NCBI GenBank assembly: GCA_044892525.1
Contig: CM097886.1
Span: forward strand, 183,074,312 to 183,138,311
Origin: Schmidtea polychroa
Taxonomy: Eukaryota
Reading direction: 5' to 3'
DNA: 64,000 bases
Part shown: positions 750 to 52,019 of the stretch, piece after piece
Numbering within the stretch: position 1 is the stretch's first letter
How the letters are laid out: the number at the start of each line of letters is the position of its first letter
Notes under the pieces: generated by a model
Told to the model about the DNA's origin: nothing
The model's database searches: none
What the model saw: the letters and a program-made list of their open reading frames with translations, nothing else
Made by a program: the position numbers and the translations under genes

Positions 750-900
750 TAATCAATAATTTATCCAGAACAAATTATCAATAAAATAAAATCAATAATT
801 TATCCGGCACAAATTATCAATAAAATATAATCAATAATTTATCCAGCACAAATAATCAATAATTTATCCAGCACAAATAATCAATAAAATATAATCAATT
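750..900. repeat. 39-bp minisatellite, about 3-4 units, just 3' of the ANK-RING gene copy 1
   Basis: Unit CAAATTATCAATAAAATATAATCAATAATTTATCCAGCA with variants and one shortened unit. Confidence 0.85.
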
Positions 901-927
901 GTGAAAGCCAGTGAAAAATCCAAAAAA

Positions 928-3900
928 TTAATTGAAAAACATTTTAGTCCTAGTGACGATGCCAGCCTTACAGAAGGGGCATTCAAATAACTCCATGGAG
1001 CAAGCATTACATGTCAAATGGCCACATTGGAATCCAATTTCCACATTATTACCTGAGCAAATTTGGCACATCTAAATTGCAATAAATCAATACAAATTCA
1101 TCATATAATCTTACTGGTATTTCCTTATCATGTTCATTTCCTTCATTATCAGGTCTGGCAGTGTTTCTGTGACATTTCTCGATCTCCCCCTTAGCAACAA
1201 TGTCTGTGCACGCATCAATTATCCGCTGGCCACGTGACGTCCTCTTATAAATGTCACCGCCCAATGAAATTATCATTTTAATAGCTGAGATTAATTTCCT
1301 TTTAGAATTTGCCTAGAAATCGATCAATGCGATAAATCAATAATCAATCAATACATTATTGGCAATCGATATTTTCTCCAATAATTGTGTCAGCGCACAT
1401 TTGCCGCTTTCATCCTCACCATCGAATTCCTTTGATTCAGTGATCAATGCGTTCACCAGTTCCATTTCTCCCATTTCAATTGCAATTTGGAGAGGAATTT
1501 GATTCCTTATGTTTCGCAACATGACAAATTTCCCTTGATTTACCGAATCCAATAATTTCCATGCAAATTCCATCTTCCTTTCTTGCAATATAAATGTGAA
1601 TAAATTTTCACCGTTTCCAAATGTTCTCGGTGCCGATATTTCCGTTTGTATCAAATGGTCAAATAGCTCGATATCATCACTATATACAGCTTTGTAAAGG
1701 AGATTCTCTATAACCGACTGCTGCAATATGGAACTAGATTTATTGAATAGTAATCTTATTAGGTTAGCTCCACAAATCTCGCATGATTGGAAGGTATCCT
1801 TAGATATAGCTGACCGCAAAAAATTGTCAGGCAAAAGCTCAATCAATGCTTTTGCATATGAGAACCACTGATTTAGGAAAGCCGTTTGAAAATCATTTGA
1901 AGTGAAATTTGTCAATCTCGGCTGATTGGACACGAGTGCAAGCATTAATCTGATAAATTGATTTATTAATATATTTCAATAAATTCTACTTTTCACTTCC
2001 AATATTCGATGCCAATTGGAAAACAGTGATCCCATTGGTTGATTTGACATTGGCATCTGCTCCGTGTGCAATCAATATATTTGTGATATCGATTAATTTA
2101 TTCAAGTTCTAAAATTGATATTTACAAGCCAATCAAAATATATCATTACATCATCATTGATATCAATTGGTGGCTCGACAAGCATCTCAAACAATGGAGT
2201 GCTTCTCAAATTGTTAACACTGTCAACCTGTGCTCCAGCATTGAGTAGTGAACTGCACATATTTGGTTTCAGGCATTTCACCGCGAGATGCAGCAGTGAA
2301 TTGTTGTCACCATCATGAGCATTCGAACTACTTAAATCGAGTCGTTCGAGAAAACACGGAAAAAGAATTCCATGAAATTTCATTGACAATGTTAACGCGT
2401 TTTCATAGCAAGTCAAAGAAATTATTGATTGTGCAAATGGAATAACTGAAAATAATGAAATTCATTAATATTAATTGAATCATGTGTCTTTTATGGCTCA
2501 TTACACATCCCATTCATTTACTGCTTTAAAAAAATTGTTAAATTTAAGTTATGCAAAGTGATTTGATCAGTTATTATTAATTTATAATAATAATTAAATA
2601 TAAAAAAATGGGAAAATATTTTTAATTCCAGAATTTAAATTTAAACAAAATAAGTATAACATTAAGAAATGAAAATATTATTTACATTATAAAAAATCCA
2701 ATAAATACACGAAAGTAAAAATCTTAAACATTGTGAAACATTGCAAATTCATTCAATTTTTTAAATAGGTCAACTTAAAAATTTATAGATTTTTCGATTT
2801 TCAAGGTTTTAACGAAAGTTCAATATTAATATTGATTACTTTGATTCTCCCGGTAATTTTATGGAATCGACACCAGCGTAATCTGAAACACAGCTTATGA
2901 CATTTTATATTTTTGAATGGCAACTAGTGTTTCCAAATTACCCAAATTACAATTCTATATTAAATGCGTTTATTCATTGCAACGCAAAAAATCAACACAC
3001 AGGTAAGTTTTTATGTTTATATAATATACACGTATTTTTTTTATTTTTACATTATGGATGAGTTTATTCAATGCATCGGGTTTTGTGACAATTTTCTGTG
3101 ATTTTCTGTGTATAAAGTTTGTGATTGAATTGAATATTTATGCGCGTTCATTTGATTAATTTATTGTGGGTAATGATTCCAATGGCTGTCTGTCCACAAT
3201 TATATTTATTAAACCCGATATTATTCTAGCTTTTGTTTTACTATATTGAAATTTAGAATTAAACTTTTTGTAACAATTAATTTATCAAAAATTAAAATTT
3301 TATTTTTCAGTTTTTGCTATATTTTTACATTTTTATTGGTTAATAAGAATTTGCAATTTTAATTTCAAGCTTTTACAGCAATTCCTGATAAATCTCTTTT
3401 TAATACTTTTTCAAAATTTAAACTTCTTTGAATAAGCTAAATTATATTTAATTGTTTTATTAAACAATCATGAGTTATTTTCTGGTTTCCATATAATGAT
3501 TTGCGGCTTCCTGGAAATGGTCTCATAGAAATCTGGATTCAACCAGATAAAGATTTTTTCAAGCTGCCATCATAATTATTGTAAGCTTTTTCAATTTGTT
3601 TTTCATTTGTTATTATTGTTATAAATTATTGAATATATGTTTAGGAATTGTGATGTAAGCCTTTATGATACGTTCGTCTATGTGTACTAGTTATTGCATG
3701 TATACATATATTTGACCTACTTTTTTAATAACTTTAAATATACATTTCAGCAGAAGACACAAGCCGTTATGATGATGCGAGTCTGACCTAAATAATATTT
3801 GAGTTGACCTACATAATATATAAGGCCAAAACAGCCTCAGCAGGTCGATCAGTGGTGCTGTCATGATGGAAGCATATCTACTACTTATAGCAGCCTTTAT

Positions 3901-6900
3901 TCATTGGCAACAGGTGTAATCATTGTAGATCCTGATCCTGAACCAATTAAAATATGGATCGCGTTGATTATTTGTTGGAATTGCTTGTTGAGTGCGCACA
4001 CAGACACGAGGCAATGTTTGTGTGTTGGTGCTGGCTATTTATTATTTGTGGGTTCTGGAAGGACATTATTATTGGTTGTTTGGATGAACTAATTGGATCG
4101 CTTTTGAATATTGATATTTTGTTTGGTTCATAAAACTTGCTAATGGTTAGGGCTAATAAATCAGGAATGTGCAAAGGTGGATTTGCCGGAGGTGATGCTT
4201 CATGAGCTGTGGTGCTCTCAATTGCTGGGCGCATTCTAGACATGGAGGTTTGACAGATTATTTGATGGCAATACGAACAGGATGATATTACAGGTTTATA
4301 ACCACAGCGCAAAGGAGAATTTGTTCGAGATATTAAAGAACAAATGTGTTTCATTGCTCTTGTTGTTGAGCAAGCAATGCAGGCTGCTGCTTTATCATCG
4401 CTTCCTGATGAGTTATGAACTACCAGATGATCAATTTATAACCATTGGAAATGAAATATTGAGATGTCCAGAAGCTTTGTTACATCCATCGTTCTTGTGA
4501 ATGGATATTGTTGGTATTCAGGAGGCAACTTATGACAGCATTACATTTTCTGCAGGACTAAAAAGATATGATTTGATCCTTCCGTAATGCTTCTAGAATC
4601 TAGATGTTCCCGTGGCATTGTAACCAATGACCAAATAATAACCAAATCAAACATTTCATTTGGCACTCAAAATAATTATTTCACAGAAATTATTTCTATT
4701 TTCTTTAACAAATTAATTAAAAGTTTTAGTTTGATAAAGTTTCACATCAAAACAAGTATTAATATCGAAATAATAAAAGCAGATCGATTGCATATTAATT
4801 TGAATTAAATCAATTAATTAATTAATCAATTAACTAATAAATAATTTACCATTTTCATTTCCGGAATATCGATTAATATTCTGTAAATAATAGAAATATA
4901 AAATTCAAATCAAATAAATTGTGACATTTCCTCACCTCAACAGATCTCACAACATCGGCACCCCGGTTCACCAGTTGAGCACAAACATTTACCATCCCTC
5001 GAATAACTGCACAGTGTAGGCCAGTCAACCCCATCTATATCTCACATAATTATTCAATCAATAAACAACAAATCTCACAAATCCAGCATGATCAATATCA
5101 ATTGATCGATCTATCAAATATTCACAATTGTCCTCCAATCCACTCGCAATCGCCTCATGCAATGGAGTTTGTGAATACTAAATAATGCCAATATATCAAT
5201 ATCAATATTGAATACTCTATTGAATTACTTTGTTTTGTGTATTGGTATCGATCTCAAATTGCTGCAATACATTGATGCATTTCCTATGATGCAGCGAATG
5301 GGCCAAGGCCAATGCAGTCCCCATTGTCTACAAATATATTGATTTGATCATTTCAATAAACACATACTTCATTATTTGCATTGATATCTACAATGTCCTG
5401 ATTATCTAGTATAAATTTGGTCATATCGGCATCATTATCAGATATTGCTGTGTGTAATATGGTGAAATTGACCTTGATAATAAATAAAATTAATTATTGA
5501 TTTTGCATTATTCTGATGCACCTTTTGTCGTGATTCCATCAGAATCATTCGTTCTTGTATTTCTTCTTGTATTTCTACGAATCCTTTTTCCTTTGCTTTG
5601 TCAATGGCCTTGATCCATAACTGAATGATGAAATCAATGCTGATTTAATCAATTTCATCTCAAATTAGTTAATAATAATAATAATAATAACAATAATAAC
5701 ATAAAACAGGTAAATGATAAGGTAAGCATTTGCTGCAAAATCTTTATTAAGTGAGAAAATTATTTATATAAAATAATTCAATTCGATCTTTCATAATTTT
5801 GCTTCAATGTTGAAATGCTTGCACGATTTCTTTTTAATTCATTTCTGCCTTTTATTTGTTGAAAATTGATTAATTAAAATTACTGAAATGTAAAGCATAA
5901 AATATTTACGTGTTGACATATTTGAAAATATGTCCTACCAGTCAACTCAGGAAATTATTCACTATAAAATAGCGCTTAAAAGATTTCAAATATCTCAACT
6001 GGTTCTACTGTAACTGATGTAAGCGCTTAGGAACACTAATCCCCTAGCCATGGGATATATTAGTCGCTATCATATTATTAATATATTATTATCATATCAG
6101 ACTATTATCATATTATTAATTTTGATCCCAGAAATTATTTGTCTGAAACATTTTTAAAAACCTGTTTGTATGTATCCAATAGTAACAAATTATTACTATT
6201 ATTATTATTATAAGAACTTATTTTAAAAATTTTACCACAGATTTCCATTGACATTATATTTATTTAAAAGCTTGACTATGAATCAGTAAATATATCGATA
6301 TAATTGATATTCACGAATTTTCGACACCGCCTTTTTCAATTGAATTATTATTATTAATATGATTTGACATAATGAAATAACAAAATTCAAAAATGTATTT
6401 TATCACAATTTTTAATTATTTAAACAAAATTAATATTTTGGTAAATGGTTTTGTGTGATTAATGCTTTTCTAATCACAACAATTCACTCCTCCTAATTTG
6501 ATTGCTCTGCTGGCTATGGACGATCAACTGATAAATTCTCTAATACATAGCTTGAAATATTTTGGCTGCTTTTCTAATAGACGAAACGGACCATTATATG
6601 GAGCTTCTAATGATTTCCATACATCTTTTCTCATGTACACGAATTCACAATCCTTAATATATTTATTGATCGTCATACAGTCTTGCAATGGTCTTTCGAT
6701 TATTCTGAAGCTCTCAATAATTTCTTTAAATTGATATGGAGAAGCTTCTATTTAGGAATTAAAAATAATTCCTGGTACAGCAAGATCACATTCAAATGCT
6801 TTTTGTGTCGGAGAATAACCTGCTGAATCCCGACTGTTCCTTATCGTTAACAGTACCTGAGGTAAAACGTCAAACTTTTAATTTAATTTTATTCATTTTA

Positions 6901-9900
6901 TTAATTTATTATTAATTTTATCCATTGAAGCCATTTCTTGAGATTTTAGTGTCTGATGGAATTCTGCAACTTTACAATTGGCTTGGGAATGATAAGCGCA
7001 TGTTTGATTTGTATTTATTTCAAGAAAGTTGAACATATACTGGAATAAAGAGTTTGTAAATTGATCTGTTACAATTTCAGATGGGATTCCATATCGGGAA
7101 ATCCCCACTTCAATTAGTGATTTTGCCACAGTTTCTGAATCTATATATTTAATGGCCAATACCTCAGGGTAATATGTTTAACTATCGATCATTGTTAGTA
7201 GATAGGACTTCTCGTTATTTGCTAGGAAGATTTGCAATTCTGCTTTGATATGACGATATACTTTTGATTTTAAGCAGGAATCGCGTTGCTGACACAACAT
7301 CTGGACATCCTTTGTCATCTTGTGTCATGTATATGAACTCAACATCAATATCTTGGCCATTCGTATTTCTGGATGAGCGACATATTTGGGTATATAGACA
7401 GTACTGTGCGAATTAGTGTGAATATGAAATAATTTACATGTTTTATCATCTAGTTATACGACCATGTCAAAATTAGCTCCAGTTTAGTTTTACTGTTCTT
7501 ATATTTGTTGTGTAATAACGTATTGGAGTTTACAGACGTGTTGTTATAGATAATTTAGTAAATTCTATTGTGCTTCCTTTAATTTTTTACTAAGACTATC
7601 CAAACTATTCTAATCTTTGTTTCTTTCTTATTTTAAAAGATGAATGTTTCTCCCAAGAAGAGCACAAAAATTGTTACCTTAAGTGAACACATCAATGTAT
7701 CAAAGAGATATTGCCAAAGAGTGTGGTGCGAGTTTAGGAGCTGTAATCAACATTTTAAAACAAAAGAAGGAATTTGAGACGGTTTAGGCGAATAGAAAAG
7801 GAAAATGTGGAAGGAAGAGGAAGACAATAATAGATGAATTTATAATAGGAGTAAGTAAATTGAATTCTAGAGAAAATAACCAGCAACTTCAGAAAGGCTT
7901 AGCACATGGTGGAGTTATTATTCCCGATTCCACAGCTTGACAATGGCTTATCAAAGTTAGAACAAGTCTAATAGACCTCAAAAAAAAACAATTATTGAGC
8001 TTTGTTTAAAAAAGTGACAACGAAAACTTTACGACAGCTCATATCAATAGAATCATTAAACGCGATAAGGACGATGTTTTGATCTGGTTATTGTATAAAG
8101 GTACCGGATCCCTTGTGTCGGTTGAAGGCATGATAAAGGCGCTTTGTTTAATTTGTAGAAATATCGTAGCTGTTTTTAAAGATTATAATTTAAAACGGCA
8201 TTATTTTCAAAAATATGTTTCCACGTATGATGATTACGACGGAATGTATCGTAAAGATAAAGTAGCTGGACTTAAGGAAAATCTGTTTTCTCAACAAACA
8301 TTTTTCAAGAGAATTGTCACTCAAAATTATTCTGTCGTAAAAATCAGTTATGTGGTAACAAATATAATTGCAAAGAAGTCGAAACCCTTCACAGATCGCA
8401 AATTTATTAAGTAATGTTTGGAAAGTCTAGCTGACATTATTTGTCCAGATAAAAAATCAGACATATCAAAAATCAGTTTATCGCAACTAACTATAGGAGG
8501 ACGAATTAAAGATATTCAGGACACCTTTGTCCATTGTGAGGCGTTTTGTAATTTGTATTTAAATAATGGTATGATGTTGTGCTTGTTTGATTGTATGCTG
8601 AAATCCTTACTTATACATTAATTATTATTTTTTAGAAACTCATAAAACAAATTAACGTTATAATTTGTTTTAATAATATTTGTGTTTTTATAATAAACGT
8701 GTTTTAGTTATGGATTCTATTAATACCCGTAGCTCTGTGGCTAATATGGCGACGACGATTGCAAATTTTATCAAGCCACCAGAAACATATGACATGAATT
8801 CAGACGTGGAAGATTTTATCTTAGAAACGGAACGATTCTTCGAGATGACAAATATTGTCGATGAATACAGAAGCAAATTCGTCAAAGCTTTTCTATCAAT
8901 CAATTCAACGAAGAAATATGAGTTGACTAATGAAACTCTGCATTATACAGAAAGATTAAGAAACGCTTTTGCTAAGAACAGAAGTCTTATCGATGATCTC
9001 AACGAAGCGCTAAATTATCGTCAAGGAAATGAGGCTGCCGAAGAATTCTGCTCAAAAATTGAGAAACTTGCAAAAAATATTTTGAAGCATAAACTTGATG
9101 AAGAAGAACTAAAGAAATTTTTGCTATTCAATTCGCTTGAAGATAAAGAAGTTAAAAAAGATCTCAAAATGCAAGATTTAAAATCATTTGATGAAATGAA
9201 AGAAAGATTAAAGAGACACGACCAAGTTTCAAAAGAAATTAATGTATTTCATGCTGATGTAGCTTCAATGAATAAAACACAACGCTATGCTGATGCTGTT
9301 AAGAAGAGCTTACCAAGATATAGTTATGATAACAGATCAATTCGAGAACGAGAAGCTAATCCCAGATTCAAAGATGAATATAAAAGAGAACCTCAACATA
9401 ATCCAAGATTCAAAGGCGATCTTACCAGAGAACATCGATATGCTATTTCAAATGAATGAAAACCTATGAATAGAAGTAAGCCTTATAATACCAGGGAATT
9501 TCATTCGCGAGATCATGTCCAAACAAATCAAATTTTGCGATGTTGGGCGTGCCACGAAGAAGGTCATAGAAGATCTGAATGCCCCAATATTCAATGTGCC
9601 CATTGTAAAAGATCTGGACATTTCAAACATCAGTGCCATGAGTTATTTCCAGGCAGACGTCGAAAATTCCATAAATCAGTGGCTGCATTCGGTGACGAGG
9701 ATTCAGAGGCTGATTTTGAGTACCCAAATGGGAATGCTCCACCACACGAGGAGGTGATCGGAGCAATAAATTAAAGGTAATTAATGATATGAGTAAGGGT
9801 TGTATGATTTTGAATGATTGTGATAGGTTGAATGATTGTGATAGTTTGAATGATAACTGTTGTGATGGTGTTTTTGATTATAGAAATTATATTAATATAT

Positions 9901-12900
9901 ACATTAATAAATTTTGTATGGATGAAGTTTTCAAAGACCCACCCCTAACTTCTAATGAACTAAATGTTCTTAATCGTGATAAACGGAATGATATAATAGT
10001 ATACGATAAAATGCAGGGAAGGCCCAGTGTTACCGTAATGATTAATAATGTAAAATTAGTATGCCTATTAGATACTGGAGCTAAAATAAGTGTGATTGAT
10101 TATAATATTTTTAAAATACTTGGAAATTTGAATATGACTACAAGTAATCTGAAATTAAGATGTGCGAATGATAGCCCGATTGAAATTTGCGGTAAAACTT
10201 TATTAAATGTAAAAGTTGATAAAATTTCTGATATTAAAAAAGTAGAATTCGTTGTAGCCAAAGATATAAACCCAAAGTTGATAGGAGGTATAGATTTTCT
10301 CGAAAGATTTGGAATGCAATTGCAAATAGAAAACCGTACAGACGAAATAAATACAATTATGGAAAATTCATTTAATAACCACATAAGTGAAGATAAGATT
10401 ATAAATAATTTAATTTCCACGTTTGACGGTATTTTTATGAAACATAAATGGGATGTTGGAAAAACCGAACTATTAAAGCATGAAATACTTACTAAAGGTA
10501 GTCCGATTGTAATAAACCCAAGACGACAACCTATACATTTAATAGAAAAAATTGAAGAAAATATTCAAGAAATGTTGAAATATGGCATTATATATGAATG
10601 TACATCTCCTTGGAATTCTCCATTAGTATGTGTTAAAAAGAAAAACAGTAGTGATATAAGAATATGCTTGGACTACCGTGCTTTAAATAATATAACCGAA
10701 AGACCTATTTTTCCCATTCCAAATACTGATGAATTATTAGATATTCTTGACGGAGCAAAGTTTTTCTCGACAATTGATTTAGGCAATGCTTATAATCAAG
10801 AAGAACTCGATGATGCATCAAAATTGAAAACAGCATTTCCGACAAAAAGCAAGCAATATTACTTTAACAGAATGCCATTTGGAATAGCAGCCGCACCAGC
10901 AACATTTCAAAGACTTCTCGTTTCCGCCAATGGAACATTAGTAAAAAGACTACACACATCAAACGAAACCATCATTTCATCATCAGAACTTTTCTTCAGT
11001 GCAGCAATGAATGAAGCAAATTCAAAGCTATCCTTACATTCGAACTCAGACGCCATTAAAGGTTTTAATAACCCATCCAAAAATTTGGCAATTTTATATT
11101 GAGCGGTTCCTACCATCGATAACACTGGTCTCATAGACATACCTGCTTTATGTACTTTTGGAAGACCATAAAACTGGTTTATATACAACGCCTGATAGTT
11201 TTTGTGAGTTTAAATATAAAAGGAATATGGTGAGAGGATTAGTGTTTCGTGCTTGGTCACTATCCTCCACGTTTGCTAATTCAGTAAAAAGTATTGATGT
11301 ATTAGTTGAGTTGTTACTTAAAAATGGCTACTCTAAATCTTCTCTTGAGAAGATGACAAAAGTGACCGTGGATAAGTTAATGTTTAAATCTGATAACGTT
11401 GGTATGCGTACGTCTGAATCTGAGGTACCTATTGATCCTGAGGAAAGAACTATGTTAAATTCGGAAAGTGACAAGAATCGATCCAATCGCATGGAGCAGA
11501 AATATGTGTTAGTATTGCCTTATTCGGAGGGTTTCAGAGAATTTAAACATAAAATTCTCAAATATGTAGACAAGGATCAATTCAGGATTGTTTCCACTTC
11601 TTGCAAAGTTAGCAGTATGTTTACTAGTAAATGTCCAACGCCAATTGGTTTGTGTTCTGAGCTCGTGTATCAATTTTCATGTAATGGGTGTAATGCCATA
11701 TACATTGGAGAGACTGCCCGTCATCTCTGCACCCGAGTTCTTGAACACTGTCGACCAAAAGGATTGACTAATATTAGTAATCATGTTAGGAAATGTGTCA
11801 GTAAAAAAATAGGTATCTCTGATTTTAAAATTATTTCAAAAGGTTTAAGTAATTATTGGGAACGAGTAACTTGTGAGGCATTGTTGATTAGATATTTAAA
11901 TCCAAAAATAAATGATCAAGTTGCCCGTTCCACGGAGAATTTGAATGTGTTTAAGTAATTGAAGGATGAAGGTTGGGAGTCGTGTTTGTGGTATAATTAT
12001 GTTTGTGTTTTGTAAACTATGTAATTTTTTTTAAATTTCTTAACTTTATGTTGAATGTTAAATGTTATTAAATTAAAATTTAATTTTAAAATAATATGTA
12101 TGTGGGGCTATGTAAAATATGGTTTGGTTTTTTAAAATATTGTTTTTGAAATATTTTTTTTAAAATTTTTGATACAGTTTGGAGATGATTATTATTAGTT
12201 AATTTGTTTAGATATTGCATATTTTATGTCTTATTATTGATTATCCAGATTGCGGCCTGACGAAGATTGTTGTACAATTGAAATATATCGCGTTTATGTT
12301 GAATTTATTGAGTTGGCATTTCTGTATTATTAAATCATTGCCACGTTTTTTTGATTATTAATAATAATAATAATATTAATTATTATTATCATAACAATCA
12401 CTAAATGATGGCAGCGATTTAAATATAAATAAAACGACAATCCAATATTAATAACTTTTTTTTAAAATTAAGAAATAATGAAATAACAAGTGATTATAAA
12501 GTAAAATTATTTATTGGTATATTTTGGATAGAAAAATAGAAATCGTTAATGAATTGCATAATTATATCTTTCTTGAATGTTGCTTTTTAAATTGCGTCTT
12601 TCAGAAGCTAGAGATATTCGTTTGAATGAGAATGCAAATGCCTTTATTGCTCTATTGATGCTAAATGTGCTAATGTTCATTGGAATTATTTCATAAACTT
12701 GCGTTCGAATTGACTCTGATGTTATTGAAACATCCTCAAGAAAAAACCTCACGCAAATTCTTTTTCAGGCGTTAACAGTTTTCCTTCGTGGCTTTTCGTT
12801 GATTCAATCCTTCCACCTTTTTGTATACACGGATAACACTCGCAACTGTTTGGTAATTTATATTTAATTAGTTTGAAATTTCTTTTATGCTTTAGCTGGG

Positions 12901-15900
12901 ATATATTTATCGTAAACAAATAGCTCATCGAATCTGACAGCTTCATACTTACAGAGATTTACATTCACCCTTAATATTTTGATTTTGACATCATTATTGA
13001 AAAAAGAGAAATAATAATAATAATAATAATTTTAAATCAATAAATAATAATAAATTAATAAAATAACTTGTCAATATATTATATAATTCAAATAAATCAA
13101 TAATTATTCCATTTCCACAAAGTTTATGAAATATTTCAACATAAAATCGATCGCCTTCACTCAAATGCGAAATTTAAAAAATTTAACAAATCGATCTGAC
13201 GCTTCATAAAATATTTATTTAAAATTCATAAATAAACCAATCAAATATTTTCTCACCGATTTGTCGTAAACCGTTTTCTTCATGATCGATTCGACAAACA
13301 GATGATGGCCTTGATTGACAGCCAATTCCAGAAATGACAGCTCGCCCTAATCAATATCAATACAAATCCAAATAATTATTTGACCTTACGATTCTGCGCT
13401 GCCCATTGATAGTGTGAGCAGAATTGAATCTCTTGAACCCGCTCATGTGCCCGTGAGTGATGCAGCGATAAAGGACGCACTGAAATTATTTATTTATTGA
13501 TTTATTCAAATAATCAGCTCACTTCTTTCATTAAATTTGCATTTTTGTCCATTTGTGCTGTCAATAATTCCATTGCATTATTGATTTCCTATTGATGAGA
13601 ATATTAATTATATCAATCAATAAATCAATCAAACTTTATCATCAATTGGTTTGTCAAGGATTAATTTAATAATCTTATCAGCATTGGACTCGATTGCTCC
13701 CTCCAGCACAGCCAATCCAGTCTAAATATCAATTATTAACCAATCAGAATATCACAAATTTACATAAATATTCTGCATTATGAAATCAGAAGATTTGAAC
13801 AAATCACCAAATGCGATTGCATCATCCCGTTCAATGGCAGGAAATAACTGAAATATTTATTCAAATTGATTCATAATGAAATAATTCACACTTTCTCCGC
13901 ATGAGTCAATATTTCCACGCGATCAGCACGATTATATTGCTTTGCATAATCCAGCGGACTCTTTCCATCCTAAATAAATAATCCAATCAAAATATCCGAA
14001 TCAGCGAATCATTTAAACATCCCCATTCACAAACAGATCATTAAAGCACTGTGGCAATAAATGGTACTAAAACCGACACTGCAAAACCGCGTGCAAAGTG
14101 TAAATACCCGTGAGATATCATGCTAAAGAAATAGTTGAGAAATGGCAAATCTGATCCGAATTACTAGCCAATGGAATTGCCGATTTGCATTTATTAATGA
14201 ATTCTGTCAGTGGAGATCTCCAAATAAATGAAGTCGACATTTCAATATTGCTTCATTCATTTCAGACATTTACTGCATAAAATTCTCCAGTGCAAGGAAT
14301 AAATTGCCAGAAAAGCTGCTAGAAAAGCTTTTCATTCATTTTGAGGCGTAGCAGAAAATATTTCAAATAGCAAAAATTATTTCTGTTGAGAAGTGAAAAA
14401 GTGAATTAAAAATAAAATCGATAGCAAGGAAATAGCCAATTAAAATGCTGAATTTAATGTGAGAAGTAGAGAAATGCAAATTTACAGGAAATATTTTACA
14501 TACCAAAACGTAAACAATATTTGTGATGAACATCTGGCCTGCACAATCAATATTCAGTGGCCATTGTTCTGCTTGCATTGCAATTATTGGCCTGATCTGT
14601 TTCACGGTAATTTTGATACAAATGCTATGTAAATATATAATTATTATTTTTAGCTTTGTTTTTATCATTATCATTAAATTATTTGTGAAATGTCCGAAAT
14701 ATTGGCAAATACAAATGAGAAACCCGATGAGTATTCTGGCAATGAAAGCGATGAACATTATGACAGTGAATATATCATACAATAGTGACAGCGACACTCC
14801 TGACAATGAAGGAGCTTCTTCCTCCTCAGAAAGCGAGAGTGAATATGAGAAATTTACAAAATAAAGGTGCGAATGTTACAGTTGATGAGCAACTATTTCC
14901 AACCAAGCTCGATGCTTTATAAATCATGACTTTGTTCTCACAATTTAGAAAGGTAAACCGAACTAAAGTTATTTTTAAAGTTATTTCAAAACATAAATTC
15001 TCTTTCATTTTATAATAATATATCTGATCGAATGGCAAGGAAATGTAGCGTCAAATCTGGGCCTAGAATATGGCCGCTTCAAGTACCTTTCAATATGCTA
15101 GGCTTAGCTGCAATGAATGCCTCGATACCATATAAGGGAACTGCAGCAGATAACATATCAATATGCTAGGCCTAGCTGCAATGAATGCCTCGATACCATA
15201 TAAGGGAACAGCAGCAGATAACATATCAATATGCTAGGCATAGCTGCAATGAATGCCTCGATACCATATAAGGGAACAGCAGCAGATAACATATCAATAT
15301 GCTAGGCCTAGCTGCAATGAATGCCTCGATACCATATAAGGGAACTGCAGCAGATAACATATCAATATGCTAGGCCTAGCTGCAATGAATGCCTCGATAC
15401 CATATAAGGGAACCGCAGCAGATAACATATCAATATGCTAGGCCTAGCTGCAATGAATGCCTCGATACCATATAAGGGAACTGCAGCAGATAACATATGC
15501 TGCTCAATACAAAATCAGAAAGCGTGTCACCAGTAAATATATCGACACCTTCAAATAGCCTCCATCTCACGCGTAAATGGCGCATGATTGGATATTGCAA
15601 TAATAATAACATCACAAATAATTATTTTCATTGCTTTAAATGAATTATTTCCAGTTTAATAATGAATATTATATTATAATTATATTTATTTATTATTTGA
15701 TAATATGGCAGCGCATGTAAGGCTACTTTATAAAGGTTATTTGCTAATCAATCGCTTCTGCTTGGGGAGCAAGATATTATATTTGATGGCCCATTGAAGC
15801 CATTATGACTGTTGCTGGTAGCAATTGCTGTGATTGTTATTGGCCGTTCTAGTGTTAGTTATCTAAATTGATAAATTATTGGCTGTTGGCAATGCAATTT

Positions 15901-16615
15901 GCTGCGGCGGCTGGTAAAGGGCAAGATCATATGATAATGCTGTCACATCGATATTGGCCATATCGGGCCTGCAGGGAGCTATTGCATTCTCACCCCGCTA
16001 ACGGTTCCATTGACACCTCATTCTGTGCTCTCTTGCCTCTCACTAGAGCTCTCTGAGGCAGTTCTCAATGGCATTTCATTCATTGCTCCTTATGCAATCC
16101 ATTTCACATATTCAATTAACCAGATCGCAACTCACCAGATTTAATTGATATTTCATTATATAAAATGTTAATGTTTACTTTTGTTCGGCAATCGATTCGG
16201 CATTTCCGCTGCAGCAATAATTTCAATATTTCTGAATGCCCATGGCAGCTAGCATAATGAATCGCTCTCCATCCCTGCAATTTATCAATTGATTATTTAT
16301 TTGCAATGATTATTTACCCATTTGGTCTCAGATTCCACATCGCAGTTGCTGTCAAGCAATAACCTGGCAATATCAACAAATCCATAACGGCAAGCAATGT
16401 GAATGGGCAACCGGCCCTGAAATCAGAAACATTAACCCAATAATTCGCATTGCCAATCAATCTCACATAATCATCAACAATCCTATGCACAAATTCTCCC
16501 CTCAAATTATCCCTGACGCCCTCCACATTTCCCCTCATCAAGTGCGCCTTGAAACATTGAAAATCCCTGCAATGCAAATTATCCAATGCAAATCATAATC
16601 AATATTTCACCCCAT
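928..16615 (-). CDS. Ankyrin-repeat protein with C-terminal C3HC4 RING finger (putative E3 ubiquitin ligase), copy 1; 21 exons, about 892 aa
   Basis: Hand-spliced exons: 16615-16611, 16566-16467, 16416-16318, 16274-16179, 13969-13892, 13847-13764, 13721-13635, 13588-13523, 13479-13390, 13346-13257, 5620-5522, 5472-5368, 5327-5229, 5177-5079, 5034-4936, 4880-4850, 2445-2150, 2108-1990, 1949-1355, 1312-1115, 1071-928. All introns are GT-AG, 17 of 20 are 40-55 bp, phases are compatible, and the 2679-nt CDS has no internal stop. Ankyrin motifs include [49 protein letters not shown]: CQIC-x10[10 protein letters not shown]6-CPFC. The joins across the three long introns are inferred from phase and motif continuity. 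Confidence 0.85.
4143..4545 (+). pseudogene. Actin pseudogene fragment, internally deleted, antisense in intron 16 (copy 1)
   Basis: [25 protein letters not shown] is joined to [21 protein letters not shown] and [43 protein letters not shown]; contains stops and frameshifts. Confidence 0.92.
4591..4605. mobile_element. hAT excision footprint TTCTAGA-A-TCTAGAT
   Basis: The orthologous site in unit 2 holds a 2400-bp hAT element flanked by the TSD TTCTAGAT. Here 15 bp remain, versus 8 for an empty site. Confidence 0.88.
6500..7430 (-). mobile_element. Decayed Gypsy-type integrase fragment
   Basis: [27 protein letters not shown]...[18 protein letters not shown] (rve core) and a C-terminal [19 protein letters not shown]; multiple stops. 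Confidence 0.8.
7640..8020 (+). mobile_element. Tc1-family transposase N-terminal remnant
   Basis: [17 protein letters not shown]...[14 protein letters not shown]...[12 protein letters not shown]...KKQLL, with a frameshift and stops. Confidence 0.78.
8127..8517 (+). mobile_element. hAT (SPIN/Charlie, GTF2IRD2-like) transposase remnant
   Basis: [23 protein letters not shown]...[26 protein letters not shown]...[15 protein letters not shown]. Confidence 0.85.
8535..10917 (+). mobile_element. Ty3/Gypsy LTR retrotransposon, 5' part (gag, protease, partial RT), truncated at a Penelope element
   Basis: gag 8680-9774 has two CCHC knuckles and one in-frame TGA. Protease [11 protein letters not shown]; RT motifs IDLGNAYNQ and [16 protein letters not shown] possible LTR (TG at 8535) and PBS-like TGGCGACG at 8747 are low confidence. 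Confidence 0.92.
10918..12360 (+). mobile_element. Penelope-like element (GIY-YIG type), 5'-truncated with an inverted RT segment
   Basis: Minus strand 10918-about 11175: FYGLPKVHK...[13 protein letters not shown] (RT). Plus strand about 11175-11958: RT C-terminus and GIY-YIG ([29 protein letters not shown]), then an AT-rich 3' region containing a hammerhead. Confidence 0.92.
12252..12294 (+). ncRNA. Minimal type I hammerhead ribozyme in the Penelope 3' region (copy 1)
   Basis: CTGACGA (12257), stem II GATTG/CAATT, then GAAA-TATA-TC. The palindromic tetranucleotide helix III is typical of Penelope hammerheads. Stem I is weak. Confidence 0.75.
12546..12946 (-). mobile_element. IS630/Tc1-like transposase HTH remnant
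   Basis: [21 protein letters not shown]...[11 protein letters not shown]...[27 protein letters not shown]...ERYNYA. Confidence 0.65.
14700..15620 (+). mobile_element. piggyBac transposase remnant in intron 4 (copy 1)
   Basis: Acidic N-terminal tract, then [13 protein letters not shown] and [43 protein letters not shown], then [12 protein letters not shown]. No TTAA-flanked termini found. Confidence 0.8.
15090..15498. repeat. 68-bp tandem array, 6 units, inside the piggyBac remnant
   Basis: Units start at 15091, 15159, 15227, 15295, 15363 and 15431; no spacers. Confidence 0.97.
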
Positions 16616-18149: not shown

Positions 18150-21100
18150 TGACTCCTTTCTAAACGCCTTAATGACTATTGTACTTTAGACCATCTGTGT
18201 ACCCATGTCAGAGGTGTACGCAATGATTGAAAATCAATGACCAGGTGAGCTCTATTGCTAAAATTACTCCTTATTGCATTTTCTTTTCAGATTCTGGAAT
18301 CCGATAAAAAGTCTTACGTCATTATTCAGTATCTGTTCTATCGCTAGATCATTGTCATGTTTTCATTTAACTGTGGTCTTCATTGCCCATTTCAATAATC
18401 TATTTTATGTATCCTTATGATTCTATAGCCCTTCAAATGTTTTATGGTCTGTTCTAATAACTACCTCTGTTCTATATATATGGCCTAAATTATTTCTATT
18501 GTTGAATATCTTAATTGGGCACCTTTTAACGTTTTACTTGCATTAGCTATTACATAAACTTTACATTTTTCTTCTTCTTGTATTAAGACTGCCCCTACGG
18601 CTTTACCGCTGGCGTCAGTCATAACTATAAATTGTTTTTTAAAGTCTGGGTATCTTAATATTGGTGCAGTTACTAATTTTTCGTTTATTGATCAATGTTT
18701 TTGATGTTTTGCTGTCCATTTCTTTTGTGGTTTATTGATTTTATCGTTTATACTTTGTACTATGAACACATTTTTACTTTCTCCCTTGGTTTTTATTCCT
18801 TTAGTTAATTCTATCATCGGTGCTTCTATTTTTGCATACTCTTGTATAAATTTACGATAATACCTTGTTAAACCTAAAAATCCTTGCACTTGTAATGTTT
18901 TTGGGACTGGAAACTTTTTTACAGCTTCAATTTTATCTGGGTTTAGTGTTATGCCCTCCACACTAACAATATGTTCCAAATATAACGCTGAGGGCTCCGC
19001 CCATTTACATTTAGTTGATTTAATCTTTATCTTTGTCTTTCTTAATCGCTGTAATACGTTTGTAATGTCTTTTAAATGTTCCTCAAATGTTTTTGATGAT
19101 ATTAGTATGTCGTCCATGTAAACTGCGCAATGATGTACACCTACTAATATTGTATTCATTAAACGCTGGAAGGTTGATGGTGCATTGGTTAACCCAAAAG
19201 GTAATCTTTATTTGCATAAATGGCTGAAAAATATTTAGAGTCTCTTAATTTATCAAATTGTTCTTGTGCTTTTGGAAATGGGTATGAGTCTTTTACTGTT
19301 ACGTCATTTAGTTTATGATAGTCAATGCACATTCTTATTTCTCCATCTTTTTTTCTAACTGGTACTATTGGTAGTGCCCATTGTGAAAAACTTTGTTTAA
19401 TTACACCTGCCTGTTTTAATTCTTTAATTTTTCGTTTTATTTCCTCCTTCAATTTATAAGGTACTCATTAGGGTCTTTGTTTTATGGGTCTATCATTATC
19501 TGTATCTATCACATGTCTAATGATGTCTGTATCTCCTAAATTAAATTCATGCTTAGCAAAAACATCGTTACATTCATCAATTAAGGTTTCTAATTGTGAT
19601 TGTTGATTTTCATTTAAATATTTATTATCAATTTTTACTTTATCGTAGAATTTTATGTTATTTGGTTTAACCAGTTCGACAACGTTTTCACTCGTATTCT
19701 CCGTTATTCACATCTCACTTATTTCAATAATTTGTTCTGCTTTTCCTTTAAATAGCTTTCATAGTTTTGTATCTTTATGTATTTTTATATTATTATTTTC
19801 ATAATTTGCAAATCGTATCAGGATTATTCCGTTTTTTGGAGTTACACACTCGTCTATCAGCATACATTGTGATTTTTTGTGATTGCCGTAACAAGCTCAA
19901 AAATAAAAGTGTCCTCACTTTTGATATTAACTTTTACAGGAACTATATGACTACATTTGTATTCTAGCTCTAAACCTTCTAAAACGATTACCTCTGAAAA
20001 TTTTGCGTTACGGTGGTTTGCTTTCCTTTTAACTGTACTATTTGTTAAATCTATCACACAATTTTCTAGTTTATTAAGTATGTCCATTCCAAGAACACAT
20101 AAGCTTTTGCACTCCTCAGCGACTTTAATATATATGATTTATTGTTTGACTTGCCAAATGGGCAGTTAGCTCAATGTTTTCTTTTAATGGAATATCGTGT
20201 GCTGACAATGATACCACTCTTTCTCTTGTCGTTACAATATTTTTCTTTTGATTCTCTGTTAATTAACCCTCTCTTATCAATGATGCTGCTGCTCCTGTAT
20301 CAACTTGAGCATATATGCTTATAATATCTATTGTTATTTGAAGTAGTGGTCTTGCTTCATTTGCCGATCCCCATAGGTCATTTATGCAAAGTTCCAAACT
20401 ATAGCACCCGTATATATTTTCTGGGTATACCATGACAACCTTTGCTTAGTTTTGGCATCTTAATTTCAATATTATTTTCCATTTCTTTTAATAAATCTCT
20501 TTGATTATCGTATAGGCCTTTGCTTGGCTGTTGTTCTGATTCTTCCGGGTTTCTTCATCTTTTTCTATGATCATTATTTGCTGCTAGTCTTCTCTTTGTC
20601 TTTTTATTAATCGGATCTATTTGTCATGTTTTGCTGTTATTAAATATTTCGCTATGAATGGACAAAAACATGCTATTAGCTTGTACGAATTTCCAAACAC
20701 TTGTCTGAGCTACTTTAATGACACTAATGATGGGCAAATCATTTTCAATAGAGTCACTGTATAGTATATTCATAATATTGCTGAGAACATGTTTCCGAGG
20801 ATTGCGAAATATCCCAATATAATATATAATATTTGGTATAATACTCAGTATACCACCATTTTTTAAATGTTCCTCTACCTGAGTAGTTTCCATATATACT
20901 TCATAATCATTGTAATTGCTCCGTTTATGACCTAATTGGTTTTGACTTCCTTAGTTATCGTTCTTAATTAGTTATTTCTGTTGACCATTTTAGTAATTCC
21001 CCTTCTTCTGTTTACTCTCGTTTATCCTACTGTTTAGATAATTGCTCTCTAAATTCTCAAATTGTTTATTTCCCCAAATTGCCGCGCTCAGGTTTTCTTC

Positions 21101-23032: not shown

Positions 23033-25824
23033 TAGGGAATCCATTTTTTAACAAAAACCGAATTCCGGAATTTTCGGATTTACGTAAGATGAAATTCAGA
23101 ATTCCGGAATTATTCTGGAATTGAAAAATAAAAAGTCAAGAGCAAAAAAAATGTTAATCAGCATAAATTTATTTCAAAGTAAACAAAGAAAATTTTTATT
23201 TTTGTATTAATATTAATAAAAAAAACATAAACAAAACAAATTCAATATTTAAAAATATATAATATAAAAATAAAATTTTATGTTTGCTTTTTGAAGAAGC
23301 TTCTCAGCATACACAAATTGTCCAATGTAGTATCATTAAATCTTTACCTAATTTTTGTTGAAAATGCTCCAGCGGCGGAAAAGGCTCTCTCTGCTTCAAC
23401 ACTTGTTGGGGGAATACACAAAAGGTTTTGTAAATTATTTCCAAAAATGGTCCACGAAATACACCTTCGTCCCAAAATTTTAATTCATTTCGAATCGCAA
23501 ATTGAATTGATATTTTTTTTTAAAGTTTTTGTAGTCGGCTGTAAAAGTGACTGCTGGATTTTTTGCTGCAACAATTTCTGTAAGGAGGGCTGCGTTTCAC
23601 TTTCAAAAGATTCGTTGGGTTCAAATACTAAATCAGAATCAGACTCGGAATCCGTTGAATCAACTTCAGCAGTAATTTCATCATTAAGTCGCCGGTCCAG
23701 TAATAGAATAATTTTATTTATTTCTGTTTTCGAGTGACCGGAAATGCTCTTGTGAATTTTTGTTTTGCCACCATTATGCAAATATTGTAGCACATCAGAT
23801 AAAATAGTTCTTCTCCGATTGAACTGGAGTTCTATCTCTTTTTTCAATTCAAGGGCAAATTCGTCATTCTCACTAAAATTTTGTAACATAAACGTAAATG
23901 TTGCATCCGCAGAAATTAAATTAGCATCTGCACGGCATAAGGCGTCTACGGTTAATTTTACTGGCATCAAATTTTTAGATATTCGTGATACCGAATCCCA
24001 TTCTGATTCATATAAAATTATGTCCGTTTCAATGTCAATTAATGCTTTTTTAATGAACTTTTCAAAATATTAAAACGCTCTAACATAGACAACATGCTAT
24101 TGCATCTAGTTTTCGAATCTAACACAAGCTGTAATTCTTTTTTATGATCTTGCTTCACGTATTTTTGAAGCACTTCTTTTTTCAAAGAAGAACGACGAAA
24201 GGTTTTAACAATTTTCCGAACTTTTGTGATTAATGCTCGTAGTTGAGTTTTCAGTTGTTTCCATAACATCAGTTTCAATTCCCATATCTACCCGAATTCC
24301 ATTGTCATCATCCTCATCACCAGTAAGATTTTCTTCATCTAACTCAAAGTTCCGTTCATTTTCATTATTGTCCTGCTCTACTTCGTTTTCTGTTGCATTA
24401 TCTACTAAATCCAACGTTTGCTTTTTATAGAGTACATTACCAATTGCAATTTGAATTGCATGAGCAAAACATAAAATTTGTTCGCAGGGTAACAATCTAC
24501 CAACTTTTTGCATCATGGAGGCACTATCTCTAACAATGCACAAAATATCATTTCCAATATTTAATTGGCATGATTCAAGCTTTTTTTCCAGCAATTTTAT
24601 ACAATCTTTAGACGCAAATCGGCCATTTTTACGAGCCAATCCCAAATTCCAGACCCGATCTCCTGATCCATGCACGTTAATATTTCGAGAAGAAGTCCAT
24701 TCGTCAAGTGTCAGATTGAAACGTACGTTTCTGTTTTTTTCAGAAATAATTCCCGAAATTATCGACTGCCGAATTTTTTTGCTGTAATCCATCACGACTT
24801 TTTGTATACTGGTAGATGATTTCGGAATATCACAAAATCCCCGCGTTCGTAAACATTTTCTTAAATCGTCTGAACTACAAAATATGCGAAACGGTAATCC
24901 GTCTGAAGCTACCATTCGAGATATTACTGCGGCAAAACTTTCGTCTACTTTTGAAATATAAAAATCTTTAATCGTTTTGATTTTTGTAGCTAAATCGCCG
25001 GTATTCGCACCAGCAGCATCCGTATCATCAATTTTTCGTTTATTTAAAATCTTGTTATGTTTAGTCCGCAGATGGGTGCGCATGGGTGTCGTACACCCAC
25101 CCAATATCTTTAAAGCCTTCCTACATTGTGTACATTTCGCCATTTGAGTTTTTGTCCCTCGTAAAAAATGAGTCCACACTGAATTTGAAGTAATCTCTTT
25201 GGAGACATCTATAAAAATTGTGTCTTGCTTATCCGCATTCCTTGGGATTAAACATATGTACACAAGAAATATATGAAATTTTGAAACTAATAAAACCTAC
25301 CTATATCAAATGCTACCGTGAAGAATTGAACTTGAATGGTTAATTAAATATTTATATTATTAAAATAAAATGAAATGATTTGCTGATTAGTAAATTTAAT
25401 ATTAAATATTAGACAAGAGGACGTTATTAAAATGATAATGATTTACTGTTTATTTATACTAAATTTACTATTACACTTAAATATAACATATAACACAACA
25501 CAACAAAGGAAAAAACATTTCTATTATGATATAATTTCACAAAAAATTTAAATGTCAAAACGAATAACATTATTTTTATTTCTCATGGCAAACTGTTTGT
25601 ATTTTTTTTTAAAAATAAATCGTTACAATACAAAGTAATAATATAGTTTTTTTGTATAATTTTTTGTCAGTCGCTGGAATTCCGTGTAATTTGTTAAAAA
25701 CAAAAAAATATTTAAATGCGAATAATCGGGAATTCGATTCATTTCAATTCCGGAATTTCGAATATAAAAAACAAGGCGGAATTTCGGAATTCCGAAATTT
25801 CGAAATCCGGATTTGGATTCCCTA
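23033..25824 (-). mobile_element. hAT (Ac-like, BED finger) DNA transposon, copy 1, frameshifted
   Basis: 11-bp TIR TAGGGAATCCA / TGGATTCCCTA and AATTCCGGA-like subterminal repeats. BED finger VWTHF...CTQC...MRTHLRTKH, plus LTLDEWTS, CFAH, TRCNS and IPPTSVEAERAFS. The 8-bp TSD is degenerate. Confidence 0.9.
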
Positions 25825-27340: not shown

Positions 27341-28154
27341 NNNNNNNNNNNNNNNNNNNNNNNNNNNNNNNNNNNNNNNNNNNNNNNNNNNNNNNNNNNN
27401 NNNNNNNNNNNNNNNNNNNNNNNNNNNNNNNNNNNNNNNNNNNNNNNNNNNNNNNNNNNNNNNNNNNNNNNNNNNNNNNNNNNNNNNNNNNNNNNNNNNN
27501 NNNNNNNNNNNNNNNNNNNNNNNNNNNNNNNNNNNNNNNNNNNNNNNNNNNNNNNNNNNNNNNNNNNNNNNNNNNNNNNNNNNNNNNNNNNNNNNNNNNN
27601 NNNNNNNNNNNNNNNNNNNNNNNNNNNNNNNNNNNNNNNNNNNNNNNNNNNNNNNNNNNNNNNNNNNNNNNNNNNNNNNNNNNNNNNNNNNNNNNNNNNN
27701 NNNNNNNNNNNNNNNNNNNNNNNNNNNNNNNNNNNNNNNNNNNNNNNNNNNNNNNNNNNNNNNNNNNNNNNNNNNNNNNNNNNNNNNNNNNNNNNNNNNN
27801 NNNNNNNNNNNNNNNNNNNNNNNNNNNNNNNNNNNNNNNNNNNNNNNNNNNNNNNNNNNNNNNNNNNNNNNNNNNNNNNNNNNNNNNNNNNNNNNNNNNN
27901 NNNNNNNNNNNNNNNNNNNNNNNNNNNNNNNNNNNNNNNNNNNNNNNNNNNNNNNNNNNNNNNNNNNNNNNNNNNNNNNNNNNNNNNNNNNNNNNNNNNN
28001 NNNNNNNNNNNNNNNNNNNNNNNNNNNNNNNNNNNNNNNNNNNNNNNNNNNNNNNNNNNNNNNNNNNNNNNNNNNNNNNNNNNNNNNNNNNNNNNNNNNN
28101 NNNNNNNNNNNNNNNNNNNNNNNNNNNNNNNNNNNNNNNNNNNNNNNNNNNNNN
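27341..28154. other. Assembly gap (814 N)
   Basis: N run. Confidence 1.
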
Positions 28155-29669: not shown

Positions 29670-30080
29670 NNNNNNNNNNNNNNNNNNNNNNNNNNNNNNN
29701 NNNNNNNNNNNNNNNNNNNNNNNNNNNNNNNNNNNNNNNNNNNNNNNNNNNNNNNNNNNNNNNNNNNNNNNNNNNNNNNNNNNNNNNNNNNNNNNNNNNN
29801 NNNNNNNNNNNNNNNNNNNNNNNNNNNNNNNNNNNNNNNNNNNNNNNNNNNNNNNNNNNNNNNNNNNNNNNNNNNNNNNNNNNNNNNNNNNNNNNNNNNN
29901 NNNNNNNNNNNNNNNNNNNNNNNNNNNNNNNNNNNNNNNNNNNNNNNNNNNNNNNNNNNNNNNNNNNNNNNNNNNNNNNNNNNNNNNNNNNNNNNNNNNN
30001 NNNNNNNNNNNNNNNNNNNNNNNNNNNNNNNNNNNNNNNNNNNNNNNNNNNNNNNNNNNNNNNNNNNNNNNNNNNNNNNA
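29670..30080. other. Assembly gap (411 N)
   Basis: N run. Confidence 1.
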
Positions 30081-30782: not shown

Positions 30783-30916
30783 AAAATATAATCAATTGTG
30801 AAAGTCAGTGAAAAATTCAAAAAATTAATTGAAAAACATTTTAGTCCTAGTGACGATGCCAGCCTTACAGAAGGGGCATTCAAATAACTCCATGGAGCAA
30901 GCATTACATGTCAAAT
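30783..30916 (-). pseudogene. Orphan copy of the 3' half of the RING exon plus 3' flank at the unit junction
   Basis: Encodes [28 protein letters not shown]; duplicate of about 886-1019. Confidence 0.9.
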
Positions 30917-50469: not shown

Positions 50470-52019
50470 CTTGATATTTCCTTTCTGTTTTATCTATCAA
50501 TTAATTCAAAAATCAATAAATTTAATTATAATTTAATTAACAAGTTCAAAATCAAAAAATCTTACTTCCTAAAATCCAAATGAAATCAATTAAATAGCAG
50601 CCAATCAATTCTCAAGGCCAAATTATAAATTTGAAGCGATAAAACAAATCAATTGCAATCAATAATAAATGTAATATATATAATGGAATTGTCAGGCTGA
50701 TAAAATTGATATTCAATATTCAATGCGACAACCGAGCGATCTGACGGATTCCCCCGATGCGGCAATTATTATCAATGATTACAACATTCCATGGAGCTGC
50801 AAATATTATTATTATTATTCTTTGGTAACTTTCAAGTAATTTCCAATTATAATTTGCAAGCATTACACAAATGCCTAAATATTATTTTAAATGCTCAATT
50901 ATATCCACTCAAATCCTCATGCTAATAAATAACAATATTAATAACAATTTTATACAAATCATTTAATTGCTTTATAATTGCTGATATTTCATAACATCAC
51001 ATATAATTGTTACATAAAATGAATAAATTTATTAATTAAATAATAAATCAAATAGAAATTATATTAATAAATACAAAGATGAAAAACATAAAAAATTAAA
51101 CATTTGAATAATTATAAAAGCCAACATAATTATATAAACAAATATACAAAAATATTATAATGGTAATATAATTGAAAGCACATTAACGCAAAACAAATAT
51201 ATTTCACTAAAACTGGAAATAATAATGCTTAAATTAAATCAGCAAATGTTTAACAAAAAATATCATAATATTCTAAAAATTTAAATATTTTAATTTCAAA
51301 TATATAATGCATTAGTAAGATGGGAAACTACTTACAAAATTATTAAAAGTTTGTTTAAAATTAATGGTTTTTTGAATTTGACTTTGGAATTTGATTTACT
51401 GTTCACCTCTTAAGTGGTAATTGATAACATTTTTGTGAACATAATTTTTCAAAGTTTCTCTATGTCTCAATTCGAATTTGGAATTTTCAGTTTTCATCAT
51501 TATTTACAATCGTCTTTCTTCCAAAAGTGTATTGTTGGTTTCTGAACTATGCCGAAATTCCGAGCATTTTGAAAGCTACAGAATATTATTATTTTTACTT
51601 CATGATTCATTAGTCGAGAACACTTCAGATCTATTTCAGGACGAGGAGATTTTAATCGGTTTTTCCTTATTAGTTTCATTCATTAAATTGCTTCAAGTTA
51701 CGATCAAGGACATTTTGGATTGGTACTTATTCTGAGGATCCATAAAAACTCGAGGTTTCGAGCTTATATGATATCACTGGAGTAATTACAAGATATAATT
51801 CTGCGTTCAATAAGGCTCATTTATAATTATTCATCTGACAATTCCACTCATATTTCATTAATGATTTTGCCAATCATGACAGAAAATAGCTATTTTAGCT
51901 CCTCGGTTTATAAAAAATTGATCAAAGATTGAACCGTAAATAATAAAGCAATTGTTGGGTCGCTTAGGGGTGTGTCATTTTATTGCTAAAATGTTTTAGG
52001 GGTATTATATGTAAGGAAT

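Follow-up and report, generated by a model that had tools for sequence, protein, structure and literature searches.

A 21-exon ankyrin-RING gene of Schmidtea polychroa, a predicted E3 ligase from a tandem paralogue family

A 64,000-nucleotide stretch of the Schmidtea polychroa genome (GenBank assembly GCA_044892525.1, contig CM097886.1, forward-strand positions 183,074,312 to 183,138,311; hereafter the window), which lies on a 190-Mb contig of the 781-Mb assembly, was found to carry on its minus strand one intact animal gene of 21 exons, encoding an 892-residue protein with ankyrin repeats and a RING finger. This gene (designated copy 1) belongs to a tandem family and is a predicted E3 ligase; we give this reading as a whole a probability of about 0.82.

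When the gene model was rebuilt from the raw sequence, the 21 exons joined into a coding sequence (CDS) of 2679 nt and 892 codons, running from the ATG at 16615 to the TAA at 930–928 without an internal stop, and GT..AG ends were present at all 20 introns, exactly as an earlier note on this DNA had described them. The gene extends over ~15.7 kb; 17 introns are only 40–55 nt long and the remaining three (introns 4, 10, and 16) are long (Table 1). Its layout is one ankyrin repeat per phase-0 exon, with exons 3–15 in phase 0 at both ends and exon 2 starting in phase 2 and ending in phase 0. The 31-nt exon 16 links the phase-0 end of exon 15 to the phase-1 start of exon 17 at 2445, so that the role assigned to it by the earlier note, as the phase link over a 2.4-kb intron, was verified. 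The DNA has a G+C content of ~30%, and usual open stretches in the window reach only 25–50 codons; with Pfam domains lying in the exons and the joints reproduced by spliced contigs, the 892-codon frame is therefore not a product of chance.

Evidence for splicing was obtained from contigs of four sequencing runs placed on window positions 850–5800, namely X1 and X2, which come from two studies and are labelled 'RNA?', and the DNA-like X5 and X7. In X1 and X2, the exons were covered, with no depth over intron 16 in X2 and little in X1, and coverage ended at 5663, whereas X5 and X7 showed an even depth over introns and exons and none of the joints at the X1/X2 splice positions. Because X5 and X7 cover the introns without such joints, the joints represent splicing rather than a shorter form of the DNA. 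Those seen in X1/X2 have CT..AC ends, corresponding to GT..AG on the gene strand, and include 1311>1354 (intron 19), 2108>2150 (intron 17), 5177>5229 (intron 13), and 5470>5520 (intron 11, cut +2). The joint 2445>4850, which removes the 2404 nt of intron 16 and had been proposed in the earlier note, was present in both of these cDNA-like runs, and together with 4880>4936 (intron 15), likewise in both, it brackets the 31-nt exon. At intron 20 a variant joint was seen, and at introns 12 and 14 loose ends of the paralogue type. Moreover, an X1 contig of 265 letters, whose match to the window ends at 5621, continues for a further 165 letters, the first 30 of which are exactly window positions 13258–13287 at the end of exon 10. 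Exon 11 is thus joined to exon 10 across the 7.6-kb intron 10 in a family transcript, as predicted for the 13257/5620 joint. One further RNA-like contig, with the joint 2443>4936, carries 33 different letters in place of the 31-nt exon; it is a transcript of a paralogue with a different micro-exon sequence, matching in length and frame.

The integrity of the gene was further examined by mapping the model onto ten paralogous loci fetched from the assembly. The order and orientation of the exon blocks were kept in seven paralogues, down to ~35–60% identity, and in all three paralogues extending that far, exons 2–4 preceded exon 5 and shared its orientation. In two distant paralogues, the exon 4/5 border falls at the same repeat position in phase 0, with both GT and AG. 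Even the minute first exon (ATG plus 2 nt, directly followed by GT), with a subsequent intron of ~44 nt, recurs in three paralogues, two of which are only 34–37% identical there. Intron 16 is long in every paralogue inspected. Intron 10 measures only ~120 nt in one paralogue on chromosome 4 and ~35 nt in a distant one on chromosome 2, and its length in copy 1 is therefore attributable to insertions. Against a chromosome-1 (C1) paralogue, every alignable exon has kept its AG/GT borders, and the ratios of non-synonymous to synonymous substitution rates (dN/dS) for the four blocks parted by the long introns were 0.26, 0.33 (exons 5–10), 0.13, and 0.30; judged by these ratios, every exon block is under purifying selection. 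Comparable results were obtained with public relatives: P0003 (UPI00060BDE3D) matches residues 95–892 of the model collinearly at 59% identity and carries a peptide homologous to micro-exon 16, and the predicted relative P0044 joins repeats of the exon 2–4 type to exons 5–9. The 16179/13969 joint is supported, at the level of sequence comparison, by the conserved paralogue border and these collinear relatives. The core proposal of the earlier note, a single intact ankyrin-RING gene spanning three long introns, holds on this evidence.

The encoded protein was analyzed with Pfam exon by exon; 19 exons were scanned, the 5-nt and 31-nt exons being too short. Exons 3, 4, 14, and 15 matched the Ank profile above its cut-off of 21.1 (21.5–30.6 bits), weaker ankyrin matches were given by exons 5, 12, 17, 18, and 19, and no match was found for exon 2. 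Exon 4 holds a complete Ank repeat (profile positions 2–33 of 33) and exon 5 starts the next, a partial one (positions 1–22, E 0.19); the statement of the earlier note that exon 5 completes the repeat of exon 4 must accordingly be replaced by one in which exon 5 continues the array. No domain types other than ankyrin and RING were detected by Pfam in the 19 exons, and the precomputed domains of full-length relatives consist of ankyrin families and PF13920 only. Exon 19, whose 198 residues are barely seen by Pfam, was modeled by AlphaFold as a helical repeat with a predicted local distance difference test score (pLDDT) of 87.7, and the top 50 fold matches of this model in the PDB were all ankyrin-repeat proteins or designed ankyrin-repeat proteins (DARPins), with TM-scores up to 0.63; the ANK domain of MIB1 was among the fold matches. 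The AlphaFold model of the whole relative P0003 (mean pLDDT, 67) is confident for residues 253–716 only, the first 250 residues and the RING being poor. Collectively, profiles and models describe the protein as an ankyrin solenoid over nearly its whole length, broken mid-way by a charged helix (exon 11) and carrying a single RING at the C-terminus.

The RING finger itself could be read directly from exon 21, in which the spacing C-x2-C-x10-C-x-H-x2-C-x2-C-x6-C-x2-C is that of a C3HC4 RING with all eight zinc ligands present. The exon matched zf-C3HC4_3 (PF13920) with 32.6 bits (cut-off, 27; E 6.8e-8). Its nearest solved RINGs are those of BIRC7, XIAP, MIB1 (RING3), and cIAP1/2, with E values of 2e-6 to 1e-5 for BIRC7 and XIAP and of 2e-6 to 1e-4 across the IAP-family RINGs, and the alignments extend to the C-terminal end of the protein. 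Where it aligns with BIRC7 and XIAP, the exon retains an Ile between Cys1 and Cys2, the Pro of CP-x-C, a Lys after the last Cys, and a Phe in the C-terminal tail. These four positions are E2~ubiquitin-contact or activating residues in structures of RING-E2~ubiquitin complexes. The RING exon is also conserved across the paralogue family and the relatives. By its sequence, exon 21 encodes an IAP/Mind-bomb-type RING, in agreement with the assignment made in the earlier note, and the protein is, by analogy, a predicted substrate-recognising E3 ligase.

Mind bomb (MIB1/MIB2) is, by domain order, the closest architecture, with an ankyrin block followed by a zf-C3HC4_3 RING at the extreme C-terminus. 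It differs from the present protein in possessing two or three RINGs, as opposed to the one in exon 21, and far fewer ankyrin-like repeats, and in that the present gene belongs to a lineage-specific tandem family. MIB/HERC2, ZZ, and REP domains were found neither by Pfam in the scanned exons nor among the precomputed domains of P0003 and P0044, and membership of the Mind bomb family was rejected for want of these domains and of multiple RINGs. The IAP family (BIRC7/ML-IAP, XIAP, cIAP1/2) provides the best RING sequence matches and also places its RING at the extreme C-terminus; its members have BIR domains, whereas substrate binding here would be via ankyrin repeats. Pfam found no BIR domain in any scanned exon, and IAP membership was rejected on that ground. 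The plant XB3/XBAT ligases likewise carry, on a single chain, ankyrin repeats towards the N-terminus and a RING at the C-terminus, but their repeat region is much shorter and the gene described here is from an animal. Membership was again rejected, the RING_XB3-XBAT31 profile scoring 16.8 bits against a cut-off of 50, and the likeness to XB3/XBAT is likelier to be one of convergent architecture.

Table 1 Exons and long introns of copy 1, with positions in the window
Feature	Position	Strand	Description
Exon 1	16611..16615	-	ATG + 2 nt, GT donor immediately after; same layout in three paralogues
Exon 2, 100 nt	16467..16566	-	N-terminal capping helices; matches N-terminus of P0044
Exon 3, 99 nt	16318..16416	-	One ankyrin repeat, Pfam Ank 30.6 bits (cut-off 21.1)
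Exon 4, 96 nt	16179..16274	-	One ankyrin repeat, Pfam Ank 29.8 bits
Intron 4, 2209 nt	13970..16178	-	68-nt x 6 minisatellite at 15090-15498
Exons 5-10	13969-13892, 13847-13764, 13721-13635, 13588-13523, 13479-13390, 13346-13257	-	Phase 0, introns 42-46 nt
Intron 10, 7636 nt	5621..13256	-	Retroelement remains, opposite strand
Exons 11-15	5620-5522, 5472-5368, 5327-5229, 5177-5079, 5034-4936	-	Phase 0; exon 11 charged helix; 12, 14, 15 ankyrin repeats
Exon 16, 31-nt micro-exon	4850..4880	-	Joints on both sides in X1 and X2
Intron 16, 2404 nt	2446..4849	-	Dispersed ~123-nt repeat; empty hAT-type site 4597-4599
Exons 17-21	2445-2150, 2108-1990, 1949-1355, 1312-1115, 1071-928	-	Degenerate ankyrin solenoid, then RING, then stop codon
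Exon 21, RING + C-terminal tail	931..1071	-	zf-C3HC4_3 match; aligned to end with BIRC7, XIAP RINGs

Searches of the genome with exon 19 gave 56 matches, several of them 99–100% identical and arranged in a tandem array with a period of ~31–34 kb; exon 19 is the same in at least four units of the array. By these matches, the gene is one unit of a ~31–34-kb tandem repeat within a family of dozens of paralogues, not a one-off, and its description in the earlier note as hidden was overstated. A second copy (copy 2) lies within the window on the minus strand at ~31278–50499 and is 98–99.7% identical to copy 1, introns included. It contains in addition ~1 kb at ~34321–35300, 2.4 kb at 35929–38330, and an ankyrin exon piece near 50038–50122. 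Exons 6–10 and 12–17 are identical between the two copies, and the changes gather in exon 4 (7 of 96 nt), exon 5 (5 of 78), and exon 20 (7 of 198), the copy-2 equivalents being 49891–49986, 47619–47696, and 31465–31662, respectively. For exons 5–10, comparison with a paralogue other than C1 gave a dN/dS of 1.28, based on small counts. A perfect 92-nt duplicate of the first part of the RING exon was also noticed at 30825–30916, ~360 nt downstream of the true last exon of copy 2, with no equivalent seen below copy 1.

Public relatives in UniParc, predicted proteins of flatworm type (P0003, P0152, P0001, and P0044), are 55–71% identical to the model and collinear with it, and share the micro-exon peptide and the RING. 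They are mostly truncated or mis-joined predictions, none of them named or of studied function: the prediction for P0152 has its start at exon 17 and that for P0002 at exon 19, and exons 1–4 are missing from P0003. These truncations at long introns lend indirect support to the expectation that annotation would miss or split the gene. P0002, P0003, and other relatives are not encoded in this assembly, where their best match is of 61–70% identity; the family is therefore present in one further species or strain at least. A homologue search with P0003 returned five proteins, none from transcript assemblies, and no encoding contigs on record were found for P0003 or P0001. In the literature, we found no paper describing the ankyrin-RING family, and the article on a planarian RING/U-box screen (PMC8807557) says nothing of ankyrin.

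The long introns differ in content, and the claim of the earlier note that they are filled with transposable elements (TEs) stands clearly for intron 10 and partly for intron 16, but is unsupported for intron 4. In intron 10, retroelement remains extend on the plus strand, antisense to the gene, across 8680–11958 and are broken near 11100; they include a gag zf-CCHC at 9466–9774, a protease and RVT_1 at 9789–11102, and a weak GIY-YIG match at 11158–11958, the open reading frame (ORF) of which may be Penelope-like. A pair of long terminal repeats or another long internal repeat was looked for in this intron and not found. Intron 16 contains at ~2953–3075 a dispersed repeat of ~123 nt, with 92–94% identical copies on all four large contigs (1027 first-look candidates) and a 30- to 70-fold spike of depth in the DNA-like runs; it is probably a miniature inverted-repeat transposable element (MITE) or a short interspersed nuclear element (SINE). 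The 2402-bp insert of copy 2 at 35929–38330 has inverted ends (CAGGGGTGCCCA...) and a 512-codon ORF. In copy 1, the site at 4597–4599 is empty and retains both copies of the flank (TCTAGA-A-TCTAGA), resembling the excision footprint of a hAT-type element. Loose ends at 4597 and 4599 in the DNA-like runs correspond to the same element ends, and hence occupied sites exist in those samples. In intron 4, six 68-nt units, 97% alike, form a minisatellite at 15090–15498, and the part at 13980–15080 matches almost exclusively other loci of the family and is thus old intron sequence, not a dispersed TE. The spacer between the gene copies contains two minus-strand ORFs (at 18692–19159 and 24205–25263), one of them reverse-transcriptase-like and the other, of 352 codons, resembling the zinc-finger region at the N-terminus of a hAT-type transposase, in addition to masked runs of N at 27341–28154 and 29670–30079.

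Several points weigh against the reading of one intact ligase gene. The read evidence covers window positions 850–5800 and, through one contig, the end of exon 10, the joint 16179/13969 and exons 1–9 lying outside this stretch; the label of X1 and X2 reads no more than 'RNA?', and that they are cDNA was deduced from the pattern of depth and joints; the sides of the micro-exon joints measure 19–30 letters, below the 31-letter rule of thumb, as is inevitable with a 31-nt exon; the RNA is not assignable to copy 1, because the RNA-like contigs are 95–99+% alike to the window and the array holds 99–100% identical copies; and ligase activity and substrate binding are predicted from sequence. With the 16179/13969 joint outside the read-covered stretch, with intron 4 as long as 2.2 kb, and with P0003 beginning just before the exon-5 equivalent, exons 1–4 might be taken for a small separate upstream ankyrin gene or fragment fused to the model, the ligase gene itself starting after intron 4. 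We regard this as highly improbable, since three paralogues keep exons 2–4 upstream of exon 5 in the same orientation, with the phase-0 border at the same repeat position, and P0044 unites the corresponding repeats with exons 5–9. Moreover, P0003 opens with residues resembling the last part of an exon-4-type repeat, exon 5 lacks a start codon context, and exon 4 shows two synonymous and two non-synonymous changes over 32 codons against the C1 paralogue (dN/dS, 0.26).

A rival that leaves the exon structure untouched concerns the state of copy 1, which could be a silent or near-silent recent duplicate, maybe becoming a pseudogene, with all RNA derived from sibling copies. Several RNA-like contigs are indeed 1–4% off the window (4 of 270 letters in exon 19 and 8 of 223 in exon 17), and the identity of exon 19 among array copies is consistent with such an origin. 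The reading frame and all 40 splice sites of copy 1 are nevertheless intact, 89 of the 207 X1 records match the window with an identity of 99% or more, and the RNA runs may derive from a strain other than that of the assembly; we consider a silent copy 1 somewhat unlikely and infer that copy 1 itself is expressed. It is quite unlikely, in our estimation, that the protein is not an active ligase and uses its RING as a dimerisation or scaffold module, or only as the partner of another RING. Activity is predicted here from sequence, and some IAP/MDM2-type RINGs work only as heterodimers, but the full set of zinc ligands, the Ile, CP-x-C, Lys, and aromatic tail residue at the BIRC7/XIAP-aligned positions, and the conservation of the RING exon across the family speak for an active RING.

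Under the favored reading of one intact ankyrin-RING ligase gene, the protein would be a substrate-recognising E3 ligase made of one chain, in which the ankyrin surface would bind the substrate and the C-terminal RING would recruit a ubiquitin-charged E2, because the zinc ligands and the E2~ubiquitin-contact residues of BIRC7/XIAP are kept. The RING is probably dimeric through its C-terminal tail, by analogy with the IAP RINGs. The three long introns are ordinary introns that became enlarged, intron 10 by retroelement insertion and intron 16 by gaining the dispersed short repeat and a visit of a hAT-type element.

The finding adds a further single-chain ankyrin-RING ligase, of a known kind, in a lineage-specific expanded family. 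The gene model may be useful for annotation, as its exons are spread over 15.7 kb and include a first exon with just 5 coding nucleotides and a micro-exon of 31 nt, and the public predictions of relatives are truncated or mis-joined. Beyond this, we can imagine, although we hold it to be unlikely, that the gene, itself assembled from cassettes, is one unit of an array that is expressed, was recently amplified, and counts more than 30 ankyrin-RING ligases, with change between copies focused on the first ankyrin repeats (exons 3–5) and on exon 20, the family forming a diversifying substrate-recognition repertoire against, for example, viruses, transposons, or other fast-changing targets, with a logic comparable to that of expanded TRIM or F-box families. 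Should selection on the binding surface lie behind the differences between copies, this regenerating flatworm would possess in the family a natural collection of ubiquitin-ligase specificities.

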